64,000 nucleotides of DNA from Thalia democratica. Lineage: Eukaryota. Below are positions 1,067 to 38,800 of this stretch, piece after piece (positions within the stretch are counted from its first letter, which is position 1; every line of letters begins with the position of its first letter). Made by a program: the position numbers and the translations under genes. The DNA is taken from positions 22,506,001-22,570,000 of the forward strand of contig OZ241827.1 in the NCBI GenBank assembly GCA_965202585.1. The letters run 5' to 3'. A model generated the notes under the pieces. The model was not told where the DNA came from and made no database searches. It was given only the letters and a program-made list of their open reading frames with translations.

Positions 1067-3217
1067 ATGAGCATTTCTCTCGGTCATTTACTAGGTGAAG
1101 ACAACCAAAAGCTGCCAGATGCTTCTAGGGCCGCTTCGGGTGACTTAATCGCGGGTCCCTCACCCGTCAACCGCACTTACCTCCCGCCATACAAAGTGCA
1201 CGTCAGCTACATCCCGACCAAGCCTCAGCTTTACGAGGTGGAGAAGTTCTTCAAACCTGCCGAAGTCGTGAGCAGCACTTTCACCAAGGTCAAGAAGAGG
1301 TTCTACGGCGTTGTCGAGCTCAAAACGCTCAGGGATTTCCGGCTGGCTCTGGCCCGCAACGGGTCGACTTTTTGCGGTAGGAAGGTGAACGTTCAGGTGT
1401 CCAAAGACACTGTTGTAAAGTTGCTGGAGCCTGAGTCCAGCAGGCCTGCTTGTCCGAGTACAGTTGTTAGAAAGGGACCGTTTGTGTCTAAACAGACCGA
1501 TGGTGAAGGAGACTGTTCCGAAAAATGCAATAAAGCTGTTTCTGATCCTCCGAAGCTTTCATGGGCTGACGAGGTACCACCGCAAGAAGATGGCAGTTGT
1601 TTTGATGCAACTGAGGATAAAGTTCACGCCAGCCCTCGACGCTTCAACTTCATAAGCGCCAAGCTCTTTTCTCCTGACGACCTCGCGAAAGTTTCCAACA
1701 GGCCGCCTTTCCGCGCCTTCGTCGGCAACATCGCCTACTGGGTGGACGAGCAGATGCTGGCCAAGTTCTTCAAACCCGCCGTCGTGACAAACATCACTTT
1801 CATGTTCAAGAACGACAAGCCAAAGGACTGCGCCACGGTCGAGTTCGAGTACGTCGAGGACTACGTGGTGGCGCTGAAGAAGAACGGGAGGAGGTTCGAG
1901 AAGAAGGCAATGAGGGTGGAGGTCGCCGGCAGGTCGAACAGCAACCAGGTCCGGAACCCCTTCGCCACGTACGGCAGCGACGGAAACTGGAGGAAAAAAC
2001 CGGATGACGAAGTCAAAAAAGTTAAAAAGGCCCCCGCGGACCTTTCCGAAGTGCCCAACCGTCCGCCGTTCAAAGCCTACCTGAAGAACTTGCCGTACGA
2101 CGCCAGCGTAAAAAACGTCAACGACTTCTTTAGGCCCATTAAAAACGTGAAGGTCGAGATCCTATGTTTCAGAGACACTAATAAGAAGAAGGGCTGCGCT
2201 TTTGCCGAGTTTGAGTCCAAGGACGACCTCGTGCAAGCCCTTGAAAAAGACGGTGAGTTTATTTTTGGTAGGGGTATTAATATATCTGTTTATAAAAAAA
2301 AACCGCTTCCAGTATACCCTCCCGAGAAAAACATTCGCGTCAATCTTGCAAACGTTCCAAAAAACCCGCCGTACAAAGCCCACATCTTCAATTTGCCGTA
2401 CGGCGCGGTCGACGACGACCTGTACAGCTACTTCTACCAGTGCAGAATCGTCCACATCGATCGGCATGAAGACGAGGACGGAAACTTTCTCGGCGACGTC
2501 ATCGCGGAGTTCGAGACCCGAGCGGACCTGATTGAGGCGCTGAAGATGCACAAAGGATTAATCGGCAATAGGAAAGTCGGGATTGAGGTGCACTGGGTTC
2601 ACCAGCCGCTGAAGATCGTCCACCAGCAGCCGGCCATCGTCGATTTGTTAAAAGTTCCCAAGGGCCCGCCGTTCATGGCGTACGCGAGCAACTTCCCTTA
2701 CAGGGCGTGCGAGCTGGACGTCCAGAACTTTTTCAATCCGGTCCGCGTCGTCGAGCACCGGGAGTTCCGGTTCGGCGACGGCAAGTTCAAGGGGTCGGTC
2801 ATCTTGAGTTTCGAATCGAGGCAGGACCTGATCCAGGCGCTGAAGAGGCACGGCGGGCAGATGGAAGGCAGGGTCGTCAAGGTGGAGATGCATCACGCGA
2901 AGCACCAGGCGCAGTACGGCTACTTCAAGCAGCCATCGCGGCAGTACTTTTCGACGGCCAAACGCGTTCCTCCGTTCTTGCGGCAACCGGCAGCCACGGG
3001 TGGAAGCTCTCTAAAAGCGCGCGGAAGGAACCGGGAGTTCGGCACCAACATCGGCGCCTACGAGGCGGAAAAGGAGCAAGAGAAAAGAGACATGGTGGGT
3101 GCGACGAGAGGCTCCCGGGGAGCAGACAGCAAGCAGTCTGAAGGTAAAGGAGCAGAGAAATATTTCGATGTTCAAAACAAGTTTGCGGTGCTGCCCGGTG
3201 AAGAAAAGTTGGTGTGA
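1067..3217 (+). CDS. eIF4B-derived protein with five tandem RRM domains (716 aa, single coding exon)
   Basis: 716-codon GC-rich ORF. Five RRMs each opening with the eIF4B/4H-type PP[FY]xA[FYH] lead-in: aa ~40-113, 213-287, 333-409, 434-509, 534-608. Motifs resembling human eIF4B as recalled: ISLGHLLGED (ISLTDFLAED), LPDASRAA (LPTAPRAA), LSWADE (VSWADE), DGNWRKKP (DTDWRARP), C-terminal NKFAVL (SKYAAL). No DRYG region. Confidence 0.88.
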   Translation: MSISLGHLLGEDNQKLPDASRAASGDLIAGPSPVNRTYLPPYKVHVSYIPTKPQLYEVEKFFKPAEVVSSTFTKVKKRFYGVVELKTLRDFRLALARNGSTFCGRKVNVQVSKDTVVKLLEPESSRPACPSTVVRKGPFVSKQTDGEGDCSEKCNKAVSDPPKLSWADEVPPQEDGSCFDATEDKVHASPRRFNFISAKLFSPDDLAKVSNRPPFRAFVGNIAYWVDEQMLAKFFKPAVVTNITFMFKNDKPKDCATVEFEYVEDYVVALKKNGRRFEKKAMRVEVAGRSNSNQVRNPFATYGSDGNWRKKPDDEVKKVKKAPADLSEVPNRPPFKAYLKNLPYDASVKNVNDFFRPIKNVKVEILCFRDTNKKKGCAFAEFESKDDLVQALEKDGEFIFGRGINISVYKKKPLPVYPPEKNIRVNLANVPKNPPYKAHIFNLPYGAVDDDLYSYFYQCRIVHIDRHEDEDGNFLGDVIAEFETRADLIEALKMHKGLIGNRKVGIEVHWVHQPLKIVHQQPAIVDLLKVPKGPPFMAYASNFPYRACELDVQNFFNPVRVVEHREFRFGDGKFKGSVILSFESRQDLIQALKRHGGQMEGRVVKVEMHHAKHQAQYGYFKQPSRQYFSTAKRVPPFLRQPAATGGSSLKARGRNREFGTNIGAYEAEKEQEKRDMVGATRGSRGADSKQSEGKGAEKYFDVQNKFAVLPGEEKLV

Positions 3218-3345
3218 ACGTACGTTGCCGCGTGAATGTTTTCTGTTGAAGTTGTTCTTTTCATTTATTTTATTAAATTATTTTTGTTTGTTTGATTATC
3301 GTTTTTGTGTTCCTGTTTTTTATATATTTTTTCTGTGTTCGCTGC

Positions 3346-3351
3346 AATAAA
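3346..3351 (+). promoter_or_regulatory. probable polyadenylation signal of the multi-RRM gene
   Basis: AATAAA about 130 nt after the stop codon, at the end of a T-rich 3' UTR-like stretch. Confidence 0.45.
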
Positions 3352-4485
3352 CCGGTGTATAAATTAACTCGTGTTTTCTGTTATAACTTGGTTTGAAAAA
3401 AAAAATAAAAATTCTTAAAGTTTAGCAATAATTCCGTTGTAATTTGTGCACAAATTACAAATTAAATATTACCTGATTTCATACTTGTTAAATGTTCAAA
3501 AGCGTAGACAGATTTAACTCTATATGAAGTTCGATACGTTAAGTCCCGTTAAGCTGGAGTACTAATGGTAAACATACTAAATAACTTATAAAAATTAAGT
3601 TTTATCTACTTAGCCAACGATTATATTTATCTTTGAACCTTGAACTTAAATACTGACACAATTTTATCAAATATATTAGAAAATTTATAAAACATAGCTG
3701 CCGAAATGTTTTGTAGTTTAATAAGTTTATGGAAAATAACTAATAACTGAACTACTATAATGTTTCACTAATATCTTAATAACGTAGCTAAAACTTTTAT
3801 AACGTGCTCGTAAAGAAAAAAGTTTTTTTATATAACTTCGTAATCAAAAGTTGATTATCTTACATTTTTTTAAACAAAAACATGTTTATTAACAACTTTC
3901 TCTTCCCTTTTATACAGTTTCAAACTAAGTATTAGTAGTGTTATTCGTTGTAGCCTAAAGCTTTTTTACCAACTCGGAACGTGTTGAAATGAAGTTGGTA
4001 AACTTGTGCCAAGCCTGAATGTCTCTATAAATATTTGTTTAGTAGATCCTAATTATTGTGAATAATATCATTAAAATTCAAGTTTAAATAAACTCAATAT
4101 ATCTAATTACGTTCTGACATTTTACCCTTAAATAATTAAACGATATCAAATAAACAGTTTAAATGAAATGTTGAGAAAATTTTCTCAGTTTTTTCTTTGG
4201 CGTACCAGTTAATTGATATTATGCTTAAAAATGAACGTATGGTATATGTTTATCTAACAATTAAGTACTAAACTCATAACATAAACACAAGTTAAACATT
4301 AAACACATTAGTAAACATGAACACATTATTCAAGTAGTATCAAAAATTAAAATAAATTGCCTAACATATACATTTTTGTAAAAAGGTTTATAAATGTAAG
4401 TGAAAACATCAATACTCGACATTACGTTTATTTAAAATAGTAATAACATTATGCAAAGAATTCAAAAACAAGACCACACTTTCTC

Positions 4486-4590
4486 TAGACAAGACGTTAA
4501 AAGTGGTGTTCGACTCGGTAACCGAAAGGTTCATCGTTCACCAGGTCCTAGGACCAAACATTTTGAACGCTTTATTTTGTCGTTCAATAA
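4486..4590 (+). repeat. three-hairpin SINE-like repeat, copy 1
   Basis: GACGTTAAA..GGTGTTCGACTCGGTAACCGAAAGGTT..TCGTTCACCAGGTCCTAGGACCAAAC..TTGAACGC..CGTTCAATAA; five further copies in the window. Confidence 0.75.
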
Positions 4591-20060: not shown

Positions 20061-20834
20061 CCGAAAAAAACATATTCATTTAGTAAACTTTTATTTGTTT
20101 GAGAAAGAAGGCACTTAAAAATGGTAACTGACTAAATTTTTGAGCGCTTATTAAAGCTTTATCAATAAGTTTTTAAATCAAAACCTAAACTTTTTCAAAG
20201 TAAGTGATTAGTTTTACCTAAACATAATGTATATATAAATGATCATTAATAATATATTGACTATTTTTAAAATACTTATTTTTGTTTATATTATAACAAA
20301 ACAGTAAACACTTACTTCATTCAATGATTGTTAGCTTACATAACAAATACCGTGACATTAACGAAACATGTAAAGTATGTGCTACCCAAGTTAAAAGCAT
20401 AGGGATGTCCCTGTAGTATTTTTTTTTGTTCTATCAAAGCTTTATTAACACAAGTTGTAGATATTTTTGATGGCATATGTGATTTAAAATAGTTTATGTT
20501 TTCAAGAAGTTTATTTATTTTTACAAAAAAAACACACATATATAATGGCACAAAAACCTGTATAATAAGTATTTCAAATTTTTAATTTACTTCTAGTATT
20601 ATTACTACGTAAAAATTGAAAAACATCGTTGCAAATATTTTAAAAACTAACAAATTTTATCAAAAGTATTTCGACAGGCTGAACATTTTTGACTCAACAG
20701 CAACTTTTTCTTTAAGGCTAAACAACATTTTAATAACAGTTTACACAGCAAACTTTTCAATTATTAGCACTGTAAGTTTTGAAAAGTTAAACGACTGGTG
20801 TTCCAGCACTTTTTTAAGCATAAACTCATAGAAA

Positions 20835-23800
20835 ATGGAAATTTACGACCATCACCCTGCGAGCAGCTACACTACGACATCCCTAAAAAGCGAGAAAACG
20901 TCCCTGCACGGCGACAAGATATGCCCTGAGGATCTCGACTCAGAGAGCAACAGCAATTCCTCAAAACAGGGAAAATCCCTTGACAGAGAAAACTGGTCGA
21001 ACAAAGCAGAGTACTTGCTGGCGCTGGTGGGCAACGCAGTTGGGATCGGGAACATCTGGAGGTTCCCTTTTCAGTGCAAAATGCACGGCGGAGGTGAGAA
21101 TTTTTGATGTTATTATTTTTTTAAGATAAAATTCAACGTTTGCGGCGAGCCAAGAACTTTATATTGTTTATAAAGCACATTTTTTATATGTATTGTTTTA
21201 AATTTTTATAGAGTGGTTTCAAATTGTAATTTAGAGAAAGAATAGCTGAACTGAAATAAGAATTAAGATTTTTTTTAGTTGTATCATATCAAAAACGGTC
21301 ATAAGTTTTTAGATACAATTATAACTTTATTTTAAACAAACCGTAGCCTTAGAATCTTAATTCTCGGTAAAATTAAACTGAATAAGATTAAAAACTCATT
21401 TGAACTAGTTAGTACTTACACAATTCAGTTAAACTTTTAGAACAATAAGATAAAAAAGTTGCAAAAATTGTACTCAATGCTCATTTCTTTAAACCGATTT
21501 ATAAGCTGACGCATTCTAACTTTATCTCGCGCAAACTATAAAGTTGTACAAAGCACGATTGTTTTCATTTAAAAAAAAATACACGAGCATATTTTACAGG
21601 CGCGTTTCTGATTCCCTACTTCCTCACTCTGCTCATGATCGGCTACCCGCTCCTCCTGATGGAAATAGGACTCGGTCAGAAGTTTCAGTGCGGGTCGGTT
21701 GCGATGTGGGGGCGGATCTCGCCTTATTCGGCCGGCATCGGCATCTGCTCGTTGGTTGTTAGTGACGGTTTCATTTGCTTTTTTGACTTTAATTGTTGTT
21801 ATGTACTTGAAGTTAAAAACACTTAGCAATGAATCGCACGAGTTGTTTTATCATTAATTTGATTGTCATTGAAAAAATAGTTTATCTTTCATCCTAGCTG
21901 CATTTTTAATACTTTCTATCTTAAATGTTGTAGCAGTTTCACTTTAAAGCTATTCATTGTGGTTTATAAAATTGACTCTAAAAACAGATTATTTGTTCTG
22001 CCTGTATCATTATAAAAAACGTTAAAGCGTTTATTCAAATGTTTAGAACAGTCAAACACCAGTAGGTCTAAAATAAAAACTCAGCGAAAATTTAATTGGC
22101 AACATCGCAGACTGGAATAGTTCTCGCCAGCTACTACATAGTAGTCGTGTCGTGGAGCTTCGTTTATTCCGCAAACTCAATGAGGTCGCCGCTTCCGTGG
22201 CAATCGTGCCCGAACGCGACCACTAGCGGCGGGGAAGAGTGCCTGAAAAGCTCGCCTTCCGAATATTTCTGGTTCAGAGAAACGCTGAACCTGCCCGACA
22301 CAATAAGCGACAGCACAGGTGATTTTTTCAAAAGTTTTTCCAATAAAAAATTGTTATTGGAAAGCGTTAGATATTTTGTTTGATTGTGCATTCTTCTATT
22401 TAAGTGTACGATGAATTTGTTTAAAAATTTTAAACGTCTTAATAATTTCATCAATGATCACAAATTGACATTCAACTTTTAAAGTTGTTAACTTCAGAAA
22501 ATTTAAGAAATTTATTAAAATAAATATATAAAAAAACTCTAAATGTTTTAAAAAACTAACGTTTTTTGAAACAATAAATATTAAAGATAATTATAATTTT
22601 TATGAAACACTTTTTTTAGTTATTTTTCTAGTTTTGATGAACATTTAAATAAAAACTTTTATTTATATAAATTAAAACTTTTTTAATCACAAGTTTTTTT
22701 TTAATCTTCAAAGTTTTAATTTACTACACTATCTCTCGTGATAAACATATTTAGTTTGTAATATAAAAACAAATAAAGTTTGTGTAGCCATAAAAAGAAG
22801 AAGACTTTAAGTACCTTAAAAAGTGTTAAAAACTGAAAAAAATAACACAAACTATCAAAGCATTCTGAAAGCTTTTGTCATTATTCAGGATATTTGAACT
22901 GGCAAACTTGCGTTTCACTTGTGTGCTGCACAACAGTGGTGTTTCTAGGTTTGCAAAGAGGTGTCAAGTCCACTGGGAAGTGCATGTACTTTGGCGTTCT
23001 GTTGCCGTAAGATGTTCATTGTTACATTTTTTTAACATATTTCAAATAATATTTTCTATATCAAAGTTACCTAATTCAAACAAAAAGTAGTAAAAAATAT
23101 ACTAAATGAATTACTTTTCAAACCGTATCTGGCAGTAAATATAAAGTAGTCATTAATTTTATTTCCTTTTAACATTGCATCGATATTTTTGTTATAATTT
23201 ATAGCAAAGGTCACTTTTGTTTCATTTTATTATTTTAAAAATCGAGAAATTGAGCTGTTTGGTAACTCAGCTAAAATTTGACAAAAAGTGTTTTCGTGAT
23301 ATATCCTTTTTTAAAAACTTTTACAATTTCTTAATTAATTCAATTTTTAAAACTCAATTGTTGCAAAGCACCCTAGTTGTAATAACCAATCAAAACTAAA
23401 AACAATCTACCAATGTGTCTAACCAAATTAGTGTGTTTACTGTGGCTTTGCTAATCTGCTTACTAGTCACAAGATATAACGTTAGTTTTAAACCTTATTA
23501 AAACTCAAATACCATCAACTTTATAGTTCTACAACAGTATTGTTTAATATTTGCATCTAAAAATAAAAAGATAAAAATCCTATGTTTAATTAAATTTAAT
23601 TAATTAAATTATAACAGATACGTTATCATAGGAATTTTCTTCGTTCGTTCTATATCTTTGGAAGGAGCGATTGAAGGAATATTTTATCTATTGAAAGTTG
23701 ATGTTAGTTTTTTAAAAGTTGTCAACAATTTTTTCTTTGCACTTGAATTGTTTGATAAACTATAATAGAAATTAGAGTGATCTAATACGACTTTGTAAAC

Positions 23801-26800
23801 ATACCTGACTAAAAATTTTAATTAGGTAAAAAGTTTTCTTACATTTTTTAGTAAGTTTTCTTTGTTCATCACATTTAAAAAGGAATTTAATAGTAGTCAT
23901 AGGCATCACATGCTAAATTAATTGATCATTTTAGTGTAAGAAAGTTTTGACATTGTTTATCTATTTAAATTTATTTTAAAAACTCATAAACGATAAATAA
24001 AACTCATTAGATTCACTGGTTTAAAATAGAACTTTTTAAGTTCCTTTCTCAAATTACAAAACAAATCACACTTACGTGAAAGTACTGTAATACTTTTTTT
24101 ACCTAAAACGATTAAATAATATATTGTTTAAGATTTTGAGCATTTGCCAGTTGTTTGTTTAATATAGGACCAAAATTATTAAAAGAAAAACTTATATATG
24201 TATATAAGTAAAACAAAAACGTTCAAAACTATTGTATTAATCTTCATTCTTTACTCAAAGTTAGAAGTTTTTATTTATGATCAAAAAATATTCTAAATTT
24301 GTTAAGTAAAATTTATAATTCCCAGTTTGCAATAAAAGTAATTTTTTTGTATGGCAATTTCTATCCGAGCTTAACACGTTTTCAAAAACTAAATCAGGAA
24401 CAATTTTAACCAAACCAAAAACGTTTCACAATTTCAAAACAAAATTTCGAAAAAGTTACTTTCAAAAAACAGTGGTCGAAGTTGAAACTGTTCTCGGTGT
24501 GGCAGTCGGCCATCACCCAGATCTTCTTCAGCATCGGCATCGGGTACGGGGCCTACGGCGCGCAGGCGTCGTACATGAAGCGCCGCAACGACTGCCGTTA
24601 TGACGTCATATTCGTCGCCACCGTCAACTCAGCGACGTCACTCATCGCCACCGTCATCGTGTTCGGCGTGTTGGGCTTCAGGGCCAAGATAAAGAGCCGC
24701 GACTGTTTTGAAAAGTGAGAATTATTTTTTTTAGTATTATATATAAAATCTGAACAAATAATGTTTTGTTATATGTTATCATTTGCTTTGATATTTTAAA
24801 TTCAGAAGTACATTGGTTTTATAAAGTTGAAAAAATAATAATTTGTTGTTGGAGTATGTTTAGCTAGGGTCGTCATACATTTTGTAATAATTGAACCAAA
24901 GTTCTGATAAACTTTGCTATCAATATGACCAACAAAACAATGGTGTAAAAGATTGAAGATTAAGCTATGTTTAATTTAATGAAACTATCGAAAAGCTCAC
25001 AAGTTTATTAAATTGTCATGTAAAATTCAAGTAAAATTAGTTTAGTAAAAAAATTATTTTATCAAGCACGTTATTTGGTTTTTTTTAATAAGTACTGATC
25101 TTTAGAATTAAAAACTGTCAGTTTAAAAGACCAAAGAGTACGTAAAAAAAGTTTAGTCCATGTAAAATTAAGCTAAAACAAGGTGTGTATTATTTTTTTA
25201 ATACCTTAAGTGTTTTTAAAACAGATATCGATCTTTAGAATTAAAAAATTTCAGTTCAAACGATCAAAGAATACGTAACAAAAGGTTATTTAACTGTCGA
25301 TATTAAAAATGCGGATAAAACAAGGTGTGTATATAAATCTTTTATAAATACATTGTGAAGTTTTTTTTTTAAACTGTTAATCTTTAAAATTAAAAACTGT
25401 CACTTAAATAGGTCAAACATAATAAGTAAATAAGAAATTTTATCTAAACTAAAATAAGTCTTTTTCTTTTAATTTATTTTATTAAATGCATTTTATATTT
25501 TTACTAACAATTATAAATCTTAAAAACTAAAAGCTGTCAGTTTAAAAGATCAAAGAAAACGTAAAATTGTTATTTAAAACACGTTGATGTTTATTAACAT
25601 TCAAATATACTTTTTCTAACATCAAAAATACTCATACATTATTTTAATAATTATTAGAAAAACTTTAAAGTTAATTTTACGTCCTTTGTACTCAAAAGAT
25701 TGTATAACATTACGTGTGAGCTTTAATAATTTCCATTCAGTATGTAATACTTAGTGGATATAAGTACATGAACATGAAAAGTTTTGCTTTTAAAGTACGG
25801 TTCACTTTAGAAATAGCTGTTTCTAGCATATGTACTTCAAGTTTTTAAAAATCAATCTGAGCAATGTACATAAAATTTTGTACATTGTCAAAATGTTTGG
25901 AATGTTTAATAGCTTATTGTCGTTATAAATTCAAAAATAAAAGTAGTTTTTTACATTGATAGCCGGAAAATTCTTACAAAACATAAGTTGCTAAATATTG
26001 TTCTATTTTCTATGAGCCAGTTATTAAAAAAAAAAAGTTTGTGTTAGTTACTATTTTAATTCAGAAACTAGTTTCAAAGTGCTAACAACATACTATATTA
26101 AAGAACAAAGTACTAAATTATGCTAAACTTTATTAAAACGTGTTTTTAGATTTGCGACTTTGCTGAATTTTTCAGTTGAGGAGCTGCAACAAGCCACCAA
26201 CTATACCGACTTCGGAGAGTTTAACCCAATAAACTGTACTTTAGAAAAGCAATTAGACAAAGTAAGATTAACAAGTTTGATAAAACGTTTAAATCTATAA
26301 AGAAACTTTGACTGTTTGATTTGTTCAAAGCGTTGAGATTTTTTTATTTGCGTATTAGATTGCATAGATTGTAGTTTTTGAACGCAAGTTTAAATCTTAC
26401 TCGCACTGTAAAGTGTTTCCAATTGTCCCTCTGAAAATATGTTTGTGTTGATAGCGACTTTAGTTTTCAATTTACAAAAATAGTTAGATAATTTGATTAT
26501 AAGAATATAATAAAATCAAACCGTATGAAACAGATATCAAATAAGCATATCAAAAGTTCAAAACATTTCTTGTATTTTTTTTTTGGATATAAAAAAGATT
26601 AACAACTTGTCTAGTAACTTGCAATATTATATGCTTCTTCGTTACAAATCTAGTAATTAATATAAGTTATTTATTTTTGGAATAAATATTTTTTAAACAG
26701 TTAAATATAATTTAGGAACTAATAAACGAGTATTAATGCGTTTAAAAAACAAAAACATTTAAAGCTTATCAAAAACAACAGTACAACAAAACAGCTAAAA

Positions 26801-32847: not shown

Positions 32848-35800
32848 ATGCCAATAAGCTGGCTTCTGTTCATTTTGTTTTCGCTTGCATATAAGATTGC
32901 GGGTAAAAAAGGTACGTTTGTTTTAAAGTCTAAAGCAATTTAAATCTAAATAGACTAATTTATTTATTTATTTTCTTTATATAAGTTTAACAATAAAACT
33001 TGAATTTTACCTTAAAGATTATTAATTTTGTTGACCGGAATTAGTGGTTTCTTTCTTATAAATAACGAACTTTGTTATGTACAGATTAATGATATAGTCC
33101 CTTTATTAAACTAAAAAATCAAAATCAATTTAAAATTTTTATGTATTGTACATTTTTTGTAATAATGAAAGCTAAGACAGGTTGAAAGATAATTCAACAA
33201 AAATCAACATGTAACTTTCACAGCACTGTCAGTATCCGAGTTGTGTTTGAGCAGACAGGCAGGGTGTGAGGTGTGCATTTCGGCGCACCACCAATGCACG
33301 TGGTGCGCTGCTGAGCTCGGTGAATTTTCTTCCCGCCAAAAACGCTGCAGAACTAAACAGTGAGTAGTCAGCATTTATTTTTGTAATATTTTGAAACGCA
33401 TTTGAAAATTAAGTTTTGAAAGCTTTTACCATAGCAGTTAACAAAAACAACCACATTAAGTCTATTAAAGCTTTTGTAAGAACTTCGTAGAAAATTGCAG
33501 TGTAAAAGTTGTTTAGCTTTTATAACTATGTTTGTTTTAAAACACTACTTTAGATTTTTTTTAATTTTTTCAAACTTTTTTAAATTTTCTATAAAACTAA
33601 TTTCTAGTCAAGTTTTTTATGAAAAAAATATTTTAAACGTTGTTCAGTCTTTACAAATTACTATTTTTACTGTTTTTATATATTATTTTCAAACTCAATA
33701 AGCTAATAAAACTTTTGGCTTTACAGTGAAAACGAAAAACAATGCCAAGCAAATTTAATCTACAACCCGGTAAAGAACTTAACTTACGTAGAAGATAAAG
33801 ATTTCGGTGAAACTACAATCGGAAACTTGAGAAATCCAAGAACGATTGTTCAATTAAAGCCGCAAAATGCTACTTTGAAAATAAGACCAGGTTTTGTTAG
33901 CTACTAAAATATTTGTTTAGATTTTTTATCACTAAGTGTATTTCTGCTTGCATCATTTTATTTTGTAGACCTTATCTGAGGTTAACTAGTCGTCAGTATA
34001 AAAATAAGAGCAGTTTAAAAACTCATATACTTAACATGTAACAAAACAACTAGCAAAAATTTTTCGTAAACACTTTGTTACTTGTAAAAACATAAAATTG
34101 TATTTTTACCACAAGTATTGCCGTAGTGATTTGTTTTATAGCAATATACTTTAATGTAAACCTTTTTAACAACCAATTATATGTAAACTTAAACTATTAC
34201 AAAATTGAAAAGTCGTTAGTAAAGTAACAAAAATTTCAGTACAACTGAAAGTAAAATGCCCAAGTAATAAAGTAAATAAAAAGTTTTTGTCATCAACAAG
34301 TATTTTTAAATTTGTTTTTATTAGCATATTTTAATCCATATTTACTAAGTTATAACATTATATTTTGAACTAATATAAAACAAATACTCTTTAATTATCA
34401 TAATAAATTTAAACTGTTTCAAATGTAATACTTTATGTGACTAAAATTTTAGTTTAGTAAGCATTAAGTTTTCTTCAAAACTGAAACTTTTATTTCACTC
34501 ATTGCATTAAACTATAAGCTTTAGCTCAAACTAACTTAACTATTATTTTGTAAAATTTGCATACTTTGTTCTGTTGTCATTAGTCCTAAAATAAAAAAAC
34601 AGTAAGGAAATAATTATTCTACCTAACATTCATATCAGCAATTTTTATAAGTTCATTTTGTTGAATACTGGAAAAAATACCATGGGTTTTAATAATTGTA
34701 TGGTTGAAATATAGAAAAATTAGTATTTTTAAGAAAAAAAAACAAAAGTTAGATCTTTTATGTGCACGTTTTTAAATTTTTTCTTTTATAAACATTTGAT
34801 TTAAATTTAAACAGGAGAAACTATAAAGTTAAATGTGACTTACAAAAAACTAATGGACTATCCACTAGATTTGTATTATGTTTTGGATTTATCTCTTTCT
34901 ATGGCGGATGATTTAGAAAATCTCAAAGTTTGTTTTTATTTACTATTTTTAAAAGTTTTTATATTGAAAAACTACATTTAAATTTTTTAAGTTTTGTTAC
35001 TTTTAAATTTTATTACTTCATTTGAAGACAGAAAAACAGTACATTTTAGACAAACTTGCACAAAAAAGGCAGACAAAAAACTATCTTTTAAGTACCTTTT
35101 CAAAACTTTTCGTTTAGGGAAGCTTATTAAAGATATACAACGTATAGGCTCCTATCTTATTAAACTACATAGCAAAAAGTTTCTTGAGTTTTAAATTTTT
35201 ATACATATTATAACCATAATTACTATTTGAACTTTAATTTATTTTTTTATAGAATACACTTTTACTTAGAATTTTGCATTTATGTATTCACAACAGCGCT
35301 TTGGAGGAAAACTAGTAAAGGAAATAAAAAATATAACCGATAACGTACACATGGGCTTCGGAACTTTTGTTGACAAAGTCCTACTCCCGATTGCCAGTGA
35401 CGACGAAAAACTGTTAATATGTTTAATTTTTACATAAGTCAGCAACAAACAATATGGTAAAAAAAAACATAAATATGTTCATTGGTTTGTTAACACTAAA
35501 TCAAACGATTGTTAACAAAATCTATTTAATTTTTAGTAATAAATGTAATTTAAGTCAAAGTTTTCAAAATAGCAAAATTGATTTTATCAAATAAAATAAA
35601 ACTTCAAGTTTATAAAATCTTTTTTTTAATAATAGTTTAAACTTTGGACTGATAAACAGTTAAAGTTAGGTTTTAACAACTTCAAACTTTTTTGTCAGGC
35701 AGCAACTGATATGCGCCGACCAAACCTGCCAGCCGACCTTCGGTTTCAAGCATCAGCTGCCCCTCACCAGCGACGGGTCCAAGTTCAAGGAGTCGGTTAA

Positions 35801-38800
35801 TAGGACGGTTATCTCGTCCAACATCGACGAGCCGGAAGGTTCCACGGACGCACTCATGCAAATCGCCGTTTGTCAGGTGACTTTGTTTTTCAAATTATTT
35901 TTAAATATGATTTTTTTCTTAGGCATAGCTAAAGTTATAATTAGTTTTTAAAATTATGCTTACATATTATAGTTCTGATACTTCCAAAACTGCATTATAT
36001 TCCGGTACTTTAGAAATCTAAAAACATTTTAAAAAGTTCTTAAACTAATTTAATCATTCTTTAATTTTCACTTAGTTGAGCTACTTAAATTATTTCGGAA
36101 GAAAAAAATTAATTTCGGCATTATACTGAAAACCTTGTAAGCAAACTCAACAAAACCATAGAAATGGCCAACAATATACCAGCTTAAACATTCTTACAGA
36201 CACAGTTTAAGTAACATTTCAAAACACAGGACATCATAGGATGGAGACCGGAAGCGTTGCACGTCATTCTGTTGACCACTGACGCGGTGCCCCATTTCGC
36301 CATGGACGCTAAAATTGCCAACGTCCATCAGCCGTGCCTGAACAGCTGTCAGTTGAGAAAAGTCGAAACAAAATCGTCGAAGGTAAAAACCCTTTTACTT
36401 AAACAGACTTTTCTATAAAATTATGTTTAATTGTTTTAGTTCACCTAAAGTTTTTCTTTCAAAGCTTTAATTTGTTTTTCCAACTTCTAATGTTAGTCGT
36501 ATTTAAGTTTTTCTTCTTTCGTTACTTATTTTGAAATATCAAGCCTTTGATCGGACTAATATACATAATATTTATTGAACGATAAAAAAGCGCTCAAAAA
36601 GTTTGGTCGAAGGACCTGGTGTACTAAAAAACCTTTCGGTCATCGAGCCTTACACAGCAGTTGACAATTATTAAAACTATGTTTTTCAACTGAAGGGCTC
36701 ATACACAGAGGTGCACTACGAATACGTCAACTCACTGACCCACGACTACCCGTCCCTGGGCCAGTTGGCCTACAACTTCAGGAAGCGCGGAATACAGGCC
36801 ATATTCGCCGTGACAAAAGAAGTTCAGCACCTCTACTCTGTAAATAAACTGTTTTTTTTTTGTAAATTATGTGTATTTTAATTTAAATTTATAAACAAAA
36901 ATTATTAGTAATGTATTTTGTCTGGTAGCTGATAATAGTTATATAAGTTAAGTTCTTTAATGAAAGTATACACAGTCAGCGCTGATTTAATTTTTATAAC
37001 CTTTATTGTTTTCATGTTAGAAGTGCTATATAATATTGTTTAACAACATGGTTGTTTTTTAAAGATAGACATTTTAACGTACAATAAAACTAAAACTACA
37101 CAATTATTTACAAAGTTTTAAAATTAATATGCAGAAGTTTCCGGAACTTTTCAAGAACTCCTATGTCGAAACATTAAGTACAGACTCGAGCAACATCATG
37201 ACAGTTATATCTAGTGCGTACGATGTAAGATGTTTTAATAGTTTTTATAGATTTAAAATTAAATTCTTAACGACCAAAAGTTACTTTAAAAACAGATAAT
37301 GCTCATTTAAATAAAATCAATAGAAAAAAATTATTTCATAAAAATTAAAGTTTGTTTGAAAATTCAGTACACTTTTGAAATTATCAAAGATACTTAATTG
37401 ACTGTTTATGTTACTTTATATTAAACTAAATCTTAGTTTTGAAAAATAAAAAAGTTAACATTTTATTGAATAACTTTTTAAAGGGATGTTTTGTGTGTTG
37501 CATAAAATTATAAAACTAAATAAGTAATTGATTAAAGTTTCATTTAGTCTATTTCCTACAAAAACAGCAAATAAAGAACATATTTACATTTTCTGAGCCA
37601 AGTCACCCAGATAACATCGATGTGTCATACCGAATATTGTGCCCCAACGCTACATCTTGGAAGAAATCACTACGCTGCACTAACGTCGAAATTAATTCGG
37701 AGGTAAGCAAATTTGAAACAGTACTAATCATTGCGACACGTATTAACTTGATCAATTTAGTTTTCGTTTAAAGTTAAAATTTTATTGTATAGTATTTTTC
37801 TTTACAATGTTTAACGCTTACGATGTTTTCGAAGTAGTTCAATTCTTTTTTATAAATAAATCTAAACAAAGGTACAATTTGAATTTGAGTTTAGTTTTAT
37901 AATATAAACATTTCGATTTTATGGTTAGAATATTGAAATACAACTTTCTATCCACAATTAATATGTTAGTTCAAGTAAAAATTTATTTCTAAACGCTTTT
38001 TGTTGTTTTAACTTGCTAGAACGTAAAAAATATCCGATAAACCTTTCGGTAGTATTTTTTGCAATTAAACTCATGACTTGTTACGTTTACTTTGTAACTT
38101 TTAAATTAAATATGTTTACTAACATATATAAGCTGTATAATTGTATAAAACATACTTTTCTTGCATTTAGCTTTCAGCAGACTGTGATTATCAAAATTGA
38201 CATTAATCAAAAAATTCTCATTTTTTCAGGTTGTTTTAGAACTTACAATTAGTGGGAAATGTTCGAAAACAAAAGAAGCACAAGAGATAATTGTGACATC
38301 TCCCACTTTGAGCAGCCAAACCAGAATTAGTTTCGGTTAGTTATTTTCTAAAAGGTGTATTAGCAAAACAAAGCATTTGCAATAGTTGATCAGTGAAGTT
38401 TGGGAAAAGTTGTGTAGTTTAGATCACTTATAGTTTTAAATATCTTAATCAAAGGTTTTTCGAAAGACACAAAATATTTGTTTATAACAGCTTTTAATAA
38501 GTAACAGGCAGATGTTTAAATAAAATTAAAGAAAACGTTTTCTGTCTGCCGCATTTGTTTAAAATTTATTATAGCTTCACTGTAAAAGTAATATTCTAAA
38601 CCAAAACTATGATAAGTTAAGCAGTAATAAAGCTTTAATGAAAGTTATTATCAAATTAAGAGCCTAATTATAGTTCTATACCACAAAAACTTGTTTTTGA
38701 CTGCTTAAAAAAAGTATGTTTCTACTTAAAAAGTACCTCACAGGCTGCAGGGTTTGCTTCGTGGGCCGCATTTGGTTAACAATCTGTAGTTTCTTTTGTT

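Follow-up and report, generated by a model that had tools for sequence, protein, structure and literature searches.

What kind of gene encodes five RNA recognition motifs (RRMs) in one unbroken reading frame, and from what was it made? The question is raised by a locus of the pelagic tunicate Thalia democratica, located in a 64,000-nucleotide stretch of contig OZ241827.1 (assembly GCA_965202585.1, positions 22,506,001 to 22,570,000 of the forward strand). This stretch is referred to as the window, and all coordinates are window positions. The original prediction, which was made from the DNA letters, had read the locus as a lineage-specific paralogue of the translation initiation factor eIF4B in which the single RRM was amplified five-fold and the DRYG region was lost, and had proposed a translation regulator or RNA scaffold as its product. 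The analysis reported here favours, with a probability of roughly 0.75 as judged from sequence comparison, a functional protein-coding gene that is restricted to a narrow lineage and was derived from eIF4B.

The gene was found to consist of a single uninterrupted open reading frame (ORF) of 716 codons on the forward strand (1067-3217), which is the sole ORF of at least 150 amino acids (aa) in the 64-kb window. Pfam RRM_1 matched the product (E = 4.2e-32) in five separate stretches, and the PP[FY]x[AV] lead-in was located at aa 40, 213, 333, 434 and 534, followed each time by a block of RRM length. The borders of the RRMs were taken from a hidden Markov model (HMM) built on the RRMs of eIF4B and of the five-RRM family, that is, the window protein and the relatives described below.

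1067-3217, + strand: coding sequence, intronless, 716 codons plus stop; the ORF is intact in two further lineages.
1169-1414, + strand (aa 35-116): RRM1, the most divergent copy, from the domain HMM and AlphaFold2.
1679-1939, + strand (aa 205-291): RRM2, from the domain HMM.
2039-2305, + strand (aa 325-413): RRM3, the copy nearest to canonical eIF4B, from the domain HMM.
2342-2605, + strand (aa 426-513): RRM4, the least constrained copy, from the domain HMM.
2642-2905, + strand (aa 526-613): RRM5, from the domain HMM.

An AlphaFold2 model, based on a four-sequence family alignment, contained five beta-alpha-beta-beta-alpha-beta blocks with a predicted local confidence (pLDDT) of ~70-87. Disorder was predicted for the N-terminal tail (aa 1-35), for two linkers (aa 119-212 and 288-323) and for the C-terminal tail (aa 611-716). 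Pfam, the motif positions, the domain HMM and the AlphaFold2 model therefore agreed on the five RRMs with a shared PP[FY]xA lead-in that had been proposed at the outset; in having five, the protein departs from eIF4B, which has a single RRM.

To which RRM type the copies belong was addressed with pairwise alignments, structure matches, profiles and trees. Each of the five RRMs aligned to the single RRM of P0003, a canonical arthropod eIF4B, with pairwise E values of 2e-15 to 1e-8. Among solved structures, eIF4B was the best match for RRM2 (1.1e-6) and RRM4 (4.5e-9), and the best single-domain matches of RRM3 were eIF4H (1.9e-11) and eIF4B (3.1e-11). RRM1 had no significant solved-structure match when it was searched as a single sequence; the best single-domain matches of a profile of RRM1 orthologues were eIF4H (5.8e-6) and eIF4B (1.3e-4). 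Comparison of the family profile with a profile of 17 named eIF4Bs gave a match of 98.6% probability (E = 4.8e-16), which ran through RRM3. The lead-in was present in 14 of 14 family RRMs and in 82 of 96 rows of eIF4B/4H type, compared to 2 of 408 other rows, and the eIF4B/4H subtype of RRM with its PP[FY]xA lead-in was recognised in all five copies of the window protein, least clearly in RRM5.

In a FastTree phylogeny of 504 RRM domains (150 best database matches), the 14 family RRMs formed one starred clade. An IQ-TREE analysis of 100 domains placed these 14 and four RRMs of P0040, a protein that is considered further below, in one group (support 92/90). This group fell within a 70-row clade (91/87), alongside the RRMs of named animal eIF4Bs (90/84) and eIF4B/4H-like RRMs of fungi or protists (99/93, starred). 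Outside this eIF4B-type clade lay the 30 RRMs that were taken from 15 other multi-RRM proteins; a grouping with the RRMs of such proteins, which would have spoken against the eIF4B assignment, was not seen for the 15 sampled. Monophyly of the 14 family RRMs was not rejected by the approximately unbiased (AU) test (p = 0.43). The domain tree was built on 88 columns and contained no named metazoan eIF4H sequence. Because of the small number of columns it cannot settle whether the family nests inside the eIF4B-type clade; it shows adjacency to the RRMs of eIF4B, and nesting would have to be argued from the lead-in and the flanking motifs. Taken together, the domain tree, the lead-in frequency and the structure matches bore out the assignment of the RRMs to the eIF4B/eIF4H type.

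The same tree informed the history of the copies. RRM4 and RRM5 were sisters (98/84, starred), as were RRM1 and RRM2 (89/83), and RRMs at orthologous positions grouped across orthologues. Since the RRMs sort by position in this way, all four duplications predate the split of the three lineages in which the gene was found. The tree accordingly indicates that one ancestral eIF4B-type RRM, together with its lead-in of ~10 residues, was duplicated four times within the gene before these lineages separated, and that RRM1 and RRM2 are a pair and RRM3, RRM4 and RRM5 a second set. The internal duplication that had been postulated is supported both by the single group and by this sorting.

A whole-length profile-profile comparison with eIF4B returned the RRM only, and for this reason the flanking regions were examined segment by segment. 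HMMs of segments of the eIF4B alignment were scored against 500-1000 shuffles; the resulting significance values are empirical and uncorrected. The following motifs scored above the shuffles.

1547-1579, + strand (aa 161-171): SWADE motif in the disordered linker before RRM2 (P ~0.002-0.004 against shuffles).
1979-2011, + strand (aa 305-315): NWR(K) motif after RRM2 (P ~0.002), resembling the DWR patch C-terminal to the eIF4B RRM.
3164-3202, + strand (aa 700-712): C-terminal NKFAVL motif (P ~0.002 in the window protein and in its relative P0001).

Each of these motifs was correctly placed relative to an RRM or to the C-terminus. Residues S165 and W166 of the SWADE motif were invariant in the family, and N307, W308, R309 and K310 were invariant across its four sequences. 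The NKFAVL motif, which was absent from the relative P0004, occupied the same extreme C-terminal position as NKFxxL does in eIF4B. With regard to the N-terminal patches of eIF4B (TLSLxxFL, SWADE and LPTAPRAA), SWADE was matched, but between RRM1 and RRM2, and the others, as isolated motifs, did not rise above chance. All of the eIF4B motifs that had originally been listed were present; SWADE, NWR and NKFAVL withstood the comparison with shuffles, whereas ISLxxLLGED and LPDASRAA did not.

The loss of the DRYG region was confirmed. No stretch rich in D, R, Y and G was found, the maximum share of these four residues in any 80 aa being 0.33, compared to 0.57-0.86 in 16 of 17 reference eIF4Bs. The segment HMM of the LxLKPRT/IFGGAKPVD core, which lies on the ARM side of eIF4B, gave no match above shuffles in the window protein. 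In human eIF4B, the domain map of which was taken from bioRxiv 10.1101/2024.06.21.600094, the DRYG-rich region provides self-association and contact with eIF3a, and the ARM has been implicated in RNA binding (bioRxiv 10.1101/2024.06.21.600094). In yeast eIF4B, binding to the 40S subunit is carried by the disordered N-terminal domain and the repeats, and the RRM is dispensable (PMC8762332).

The RNA-binding surface of the RRMs was also altered. The RNP1 motif had the form [RK]G[FYC]GY[AV][EDQ][FL] in 18 of 18 reference eIF4B RRMs. In the family, position 3 of RRM2 to RRM5 was occupied by C, S, D or A; at position 5, RRM2, RRM4 and RRM5 had T or I, and RRM3 had F or M. The aromatic residue of RNP2 in strand beta-1 was mostly kept. 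Since the RNP1 aromatics are largely gone, canonical base stacking should, from general knowledge of RRMs, be impaired in most copies, which leaves RNA binding uncertain. The family RRMs may bind RNA weakly, may bind it in another mode or may bind protein. The loss of these stacking residues weakens the suggestion that the protein is an RNA scaffold.

Relatives were sought among 5.8 billion proteins by word index and, exhaustively with HMMER, among 1.84 billion representatives. Only two relatives were obtained below E = 1e-30 in the HMMER pass; the next matches were generic RRM proteins, with E values of 1e-29 or weaker. The closest relative, P0001 (locus L001), is a protein of 722 aa with 66-70% identity that is encoded on a marine-metagenome contig from ENA. 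Both flanks of its gene aligned with the window, the 5' flank over 462 nt at 77% identity and the 3' flank over 98 nt at 81%, and the two loci are therefore orthologous. P0004 and P0153 (lineage L002) came from a Tara Oceans assembly, comprise 619 and 623 aa, respectively, and are 43-46% identical to the window protein; in both, the RRM4 core (~43 residues) was deleted in frame and the C-terminal tail was missing. All family members were continuous, intronless ORFs. No further family member was found in a scan of JGI metagenomes, and the ESM Atlas returned generic RRM clusters only, those of GRSF1 and RBM12B scoring 0.83, which is at the level of a lead. These counts upheld the proposed restriction to a narrow lineage. 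A widespread five-RRM architecture was seen neither in the protein searches nor in the literature, and the literature search found no description of a multi-RRM eIF4B, in line with the earlier statement that no five-RRM eIF4B had been described. As a separate observation, GC content at third codon positions (GC3) was 0.35 in the P0004 lineage, compared to 0.70 in the window gene and 0.68 in P0001, a large shift in coding composition between related planktonic animals.

The ratio of nonsynonymous to synonymous substitution rates (dN/dS) against P0001 was 0.52 (bootstrap interval 0.42-0.67; dN 0.19, dS 0.36). By domain, the ratio was 0.28 for RRM1, 0.33 for RRM2, 0.52 for RRM3, 0.89 for RRM4, with a confidence interval that included 1, and 0.41 for RRM5. 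Against P0004, dS was saturated and the reading frame was still open. These values indicate that the five-RRM gene is under purifying but relaxed selection and that the gene can almost do without RRM4, in keeping with what happened in the P0004 lineage, where this domain has been lost. In one sequencing run, X3, which was labelled as a second organism, 38 differences were counted in a 1,425-nt contig covering 2296-3721. Among the best-supported differences listed, 8 of 10 in the RRM part were at third codon positions and 8 of 10 in 3018-3171 were at first or second positions; this pattern suggests a fast-changing C-terminal tail, the count being incomplete in that it covers the best-supported differences only.

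The coding sequence had a GC content of 0.54 and a GC3 of 0.70, compared to a GC content of ~0.22 in its flanks, and the rise and fall in GC coincided with the start and stop codons. High GC3 was limited to the coding sequence and was equal to that of neighbouring exons. A foreign or recent origin, which the high GC3 might have suggested, was considered and rejected because the start and stop codons mark the exact limits of the enrichment and because the exons of native neighbouring genes are equally GC-rich islands. Conserved or candidate processing signals were located on both sides of the coding sequence.

1046-1051, + strand: candidate 3' splice or trans-splice acceptor TTTCAG, 15 nt 5' of the ATG.
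1052-1066, + strand: 15-nt leader TTGTAAAATTTTATC immediately 5' of the ATG, near-identical in L001 and L002 in a three-way alignment.
3218-3405, + strand: probable 3' untranslated region (UTR), with AATAAA at 3346-3351 and an A10 run at 3396-3405.

The pyrimidine tract and AG at 1046-1051 were kept in the window, L001 and L002 despite the saturation of synonymous sites between the window and L002, and we infer that TTTCAG is used as an acceptor. The first ~100 nt of the 3' UTR were 81% identical to the flank of L001. A possible spliced-leader remnant at 1030-1045 (13 of 16 positions matching the ascidian leader) was rejected; four matches of this kind were present in the window when 4.2 were expected, and the match was not conserved in L001. 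An Rfam scan of the window gave no match.

Elsewhere, the window contained many GC-rich islands of 200-900 nt. Islands at 20832-24715 (+ strand) corresponded to exons of an SLC6 transporter gene (sodium:neurotransmitter symporter, Pfam SNF), and islands at 35670-36878 (+ strand) to exons of an integrin-beta gene with a VWA domain. The exons of both genes were short, each covering ~35-85 Pfam profile positions. Judged from these two genes, the pattern in this genome is one of GC-rich exons of ~60-100 codons separated by introns of ~22% GC. An intronless coding sequence of 2.15 kb stands out in this setting because the neighbouring genes are split into short exons. A further feature of the window was a stretch of ~100 nt at 4488-4590, where the summed contig depth in three genomic runs reached ~180,000-270,000, compared to ~50-90 in adjacent unique DNA, and where hundreds of contigs terminated. 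It is a very high-copy interspersed repeat, SINE-like (resembling a short interspersed nuclear element), with no Rfam match at gathering score.

Several observations weigh against a functional gene of eIF4B descent. A dN/dS of ~0.5, together with the loss of RRM4 and of the C-terminal tail in one lineage, amounts to loose constraint. The locus was recovered in marine metagenome runs; the contigs of the three runs that contain it extend across the AT-rich flanks and so are genomic DNA, with no transcript evidence among them. As to descent, the solved-structure ranking for RRM5 was led by a nucleolin RRM (3.1e-8), followed by hnRNP H' and, in third place, eIF4H (6.8e-6). With the family shifted to the outgroup's side of the eIF4B-type clade, the tree was still not rejected by the AU test (p = 0.47), and, since no metazoan eIF4H was in the tree, the choice between eIF4B and eIF4H as the ancestor falls to the C-terminal patch. 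The scores of the flanking motifs were small (4-8 bits), and the N-terminal ISLxxLLGED and LPDASRAA, taken as isolated motifs, did not beat shuffles (P 0.1-0.25), LPDASRAA falling inside the BLAST alignment of RRM1 to eIF4B. RNP1 positions 3 and 5, which are aromatic in all reference eIF4Bs, were replaced by C/D/S and T/I in RRM2, RRM4 and RRM5. With respect to an origin by retroposition, no target-site duplication was found, the longest flanking repeat being 7 nt and no longer than that in every one of 300 shuffles, and the possible poly(A) remnant was weak, consisting of the A10 run 44 nt after AATAAA. Both a poly(A) remnant and a target-site duplication would be expected to erode in an old insertion.

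The gene could be the sole eIF4B of its lineage, a highly remodelled orthologue that has replaced the canonical single-RRM factor rather than a paralogue of it. Tunicate genes evolve fast, and the architecture of eIF4B can change greatly because, in yeast, the RRM is dispensable and the function lies in the disordered parts (PMC8762332). Ciona, however, has retained a canonical eIF4B (P0274, LOC100183462) with one RRM and a stretch rich in D, R, Y and G, and the window protein has none of the segments that are linked to contact with eIF3a and to strong binding of RNA. Nor would a sole essential factor be expected to show a dN/dS of 0.5 with a near-neutral RRM4, or to have lost both the core of RRM4 and its C-terminal patch in one lineage. 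Such a replacement is considered improbable. Descent from eIF4H, or from a common eIF4B/4H-type RRM of another gene, would account for the high rank of eIF4H among the solved-structure matches of RRM1, RRM3 and RRM5, where it comes first or nearly so; in addition, eIF4B and eIF4H are not told apart by the RRM tree where the five-RRM family is concerned, and a SWAD sequence is found in P0024, a fungal protein that bears the label eIF4H. This origin too is unlikely, however, given that the window protein and P0001 carry NKFxxL, like eIF4B, at their extreme C-terminus and that the LxLKPRT/IFGGA tail of short eIF4H-like proteins is absent. Human eIF4H ends in an IFGGARP segment and is not known to have a C-terminal NKFxxL patch.

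A further possibility considered was that the product belongs with multi-RRM proteins such as nucleolin, RBM12, hnRNP H/F or RBM19 and is unrelated to eIF4B, its likeness to which would be convergent or generic. Nucleolin was the top solved-structure match for RRM5 and, when summed over three stretches, for RRM3; hnRNP H, GRSF1 and RBM12 were among the structure matches, and the lead-level Atlas clusters of GRSF1 and RBM12B point the same way. Against this, the five RRMs are each other's closest relatives and not five old, distinct types, the RRMs of 15 other multi-RRM proteins fall outside their clade, the lead-in is near-exclusive to RRMs of eIF4B/4H type and the flanking motifs point to eIF4B, so that an unrelated origin is very unlikely. 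Least credible is a decaying retro-pseudogene with an ORF that is long by chance. An intronless locus that is seen in genomic runs only, with a dN/dS of 0.5 and a near-neutral RRM4, might invite this view, but more than 600 codons have stayed open in three lineages, one of them at saturated dS, the 14-20 alignment gaps per pair all lie within open reading frames, the whole-gene dN/dS was below 1 in every bootstrap, and a GC3 of 0.70 has been held amid surroundings of 22% GC. We therefore retain a functional, lineage-restricted gene derived from eIF4B as the preferred reading.

Comparison with known systems sets out what such a derivative has kept and what it has lost. The window protein shares with eIF4B the RRM type and its lead-in, D-x-S-x-[VI]-P-x-x-P-P-[FY]-x-A, as well as SWADE before an RRM, (D/N)WR after it and NKFxxL at the extreme C-terminus. 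It differs from eIF4B in that it has five RRMs rather than one and lacks both the DRYG-rich region and LxLKPRT/IFGGAKPVD; its RNP1 aromatics are mostly replaced, and its gene lacks introns, has a higher rate of evolution (dN/dS 0.5) and is known from three lineages only. With eIF4H it has in common the RRM subtype and lead-in, the lack of a DRYG region and a high solved-structure similarity. In contrast to eIF4H-like proteins, which are short, have one RRM and end in the LxLKPRT/IFGGA tail, it has 716 aa, five RRMs, no such tail and an eIF4B-like C-terminal patch. As in nucleolin, RBM12, hnRNP H/F, GRSF1, RBM19 and PABP, several RRMs are carried on flexible linkers, and hnRNP H/F and GRSF1 are likewise without canonical RNP aromatics. 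The RRMs of classical multi-RRM proteins are old, distinct paralogues, whereas the five RRMs of the window protein are a recent group of their own.

Other proteins with more than one eIF4B-type RRM were encountered in the searches. P0040 (locus L003), an unnamed singleton of 676 aa from a Logan contig of SRR11430617, contains four eIF4B-type RRMs, degenerate in their RNP motifs, which line up with RRM2 to RRM5 in register (21-25% identity, E = 1e-17) and has an ENWADDE motif in its N-terminus. It is the nearest group to the family in the tree (92/90), and a homologue search with P0040 returned only P0040 itself. On these data P0040 either belongs to the five-RRM family as a very remote member or represents an independent parallel. 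Two eIF4B-type RRMs were present in an auto-annotated 'eIF4B-like' protein of Dreissena polymorpha (XP_052212595, P0009), and the unnamed proteins P0022, P0036, P0046, P0128 and P0146 each have two RRMs of eIF4B/4H type, several of them keeping the IFGGAKP tail. In P0013, also from Dreissena, two eIF4B-type RRMs are joined to a C-terminus like that of ZAP (CCCH antiviral protein-like), and P0182, a gene model from a sponge and perhaps a fused one, has two eIF4B RRMs. These two- and four-RRM proteins resemble the family in the internal duplication of an eIF4B/4H-type RRM with its lead-in and differ from it in having fewer copies. The two- and four-RRM proteins look like independent events, since the Dreissena copies nest within animal eIF4B and the protist-like copies are grouped with the eIF4B/4H of fungi and protists; RRM duplication in eIF4B seems to recur. 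No study of two- or four-RRM eIF4B-type proteins was found in the literature. The claim of novelty for a multi-RRM eIF4B thus holds for the five-RRM form, which has no description in the literature, and is qualified by the existence of the two-RRM Dreissena proteins and of the four-RRM P0040.

How the gene arose may be reconstructed in outline. A birth by retroposition of a spliced eIF4B mRNA is plausible, and is suggested by the contrast between this intronless gene and the short exons of its neighbours; no intron interrupts the coding sequence in any of the three lineages, and the neighbours compared were the SLC6 and integrin-beta genes. An intronless copy of the eIF4B mRNA would have been inserted, the unit of RRM and lead-in would then have been multiplied to five copies, and the DRYG/ARM part would have been lost. 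At the conserved AG, 15 nt 5' of the ATG, a spliced leader or an upstream exon may be joined to the mRNA of the resulting gene. The product of this gene would be a flexible chain of five weak, non-canonical RRMs which, without the DRYG/ARM part, would lack self-association, contact with eIF3a and the strong RNA binding needed for stimulation of eIF4A. The unit of SWADE, RRM2 and NWR, together with the C-terminal patch, may dock where eIF4B docks.

What the protein does can be proposed only tentatively. Rather than serving as a general initiation factor, it might modulate mRNA recruitment in a specialised way or compete in it, a role that we put forward as a conjecture. In a broader form, which is likewise speculative, the protein could be a translation-factor derivative of pelagic tunicates that has kept docking patches and has replaced the DRYG/ARM part with a chain of RNP-degenerate RRMs, serving as a regulator of or competitor in mRNA recruitment; viewed alongside the proteins with two to four RRMs in a bivalve, in protist-like sequences and in P0040, multiplication of the RRM would then be a recurrent and undescribed route by which such derivatives form. 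A regulatory role might perhaps be confined to the germ line or to one life stage.

The five-RRM gene does not address a long-standing open question. Its interest lies in the fact that eIF4B has been described as a protein with one structured domain, the RRM, and with functions that reside mostly in disordered regions (bioRxiv 10.1101/2024.06.21.600094; PMC8762332). Here, the disordered functional regions of eIF4B appear to have been discarded and the RRM to have been multiplied five-fold in a natural experiment, and selection still keeps the gene. If it is expressed, it would allow the capacities of the eIF4B RRM and of the small patches beside it to be studied in isolation, and it would be a case study of a young gene made by retroposition and subsequent internal domain amplification. 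Together with the relatives that have two to four RRMs, it provides a hint that eIF4B has spun off RNA-binding paralogues several times.

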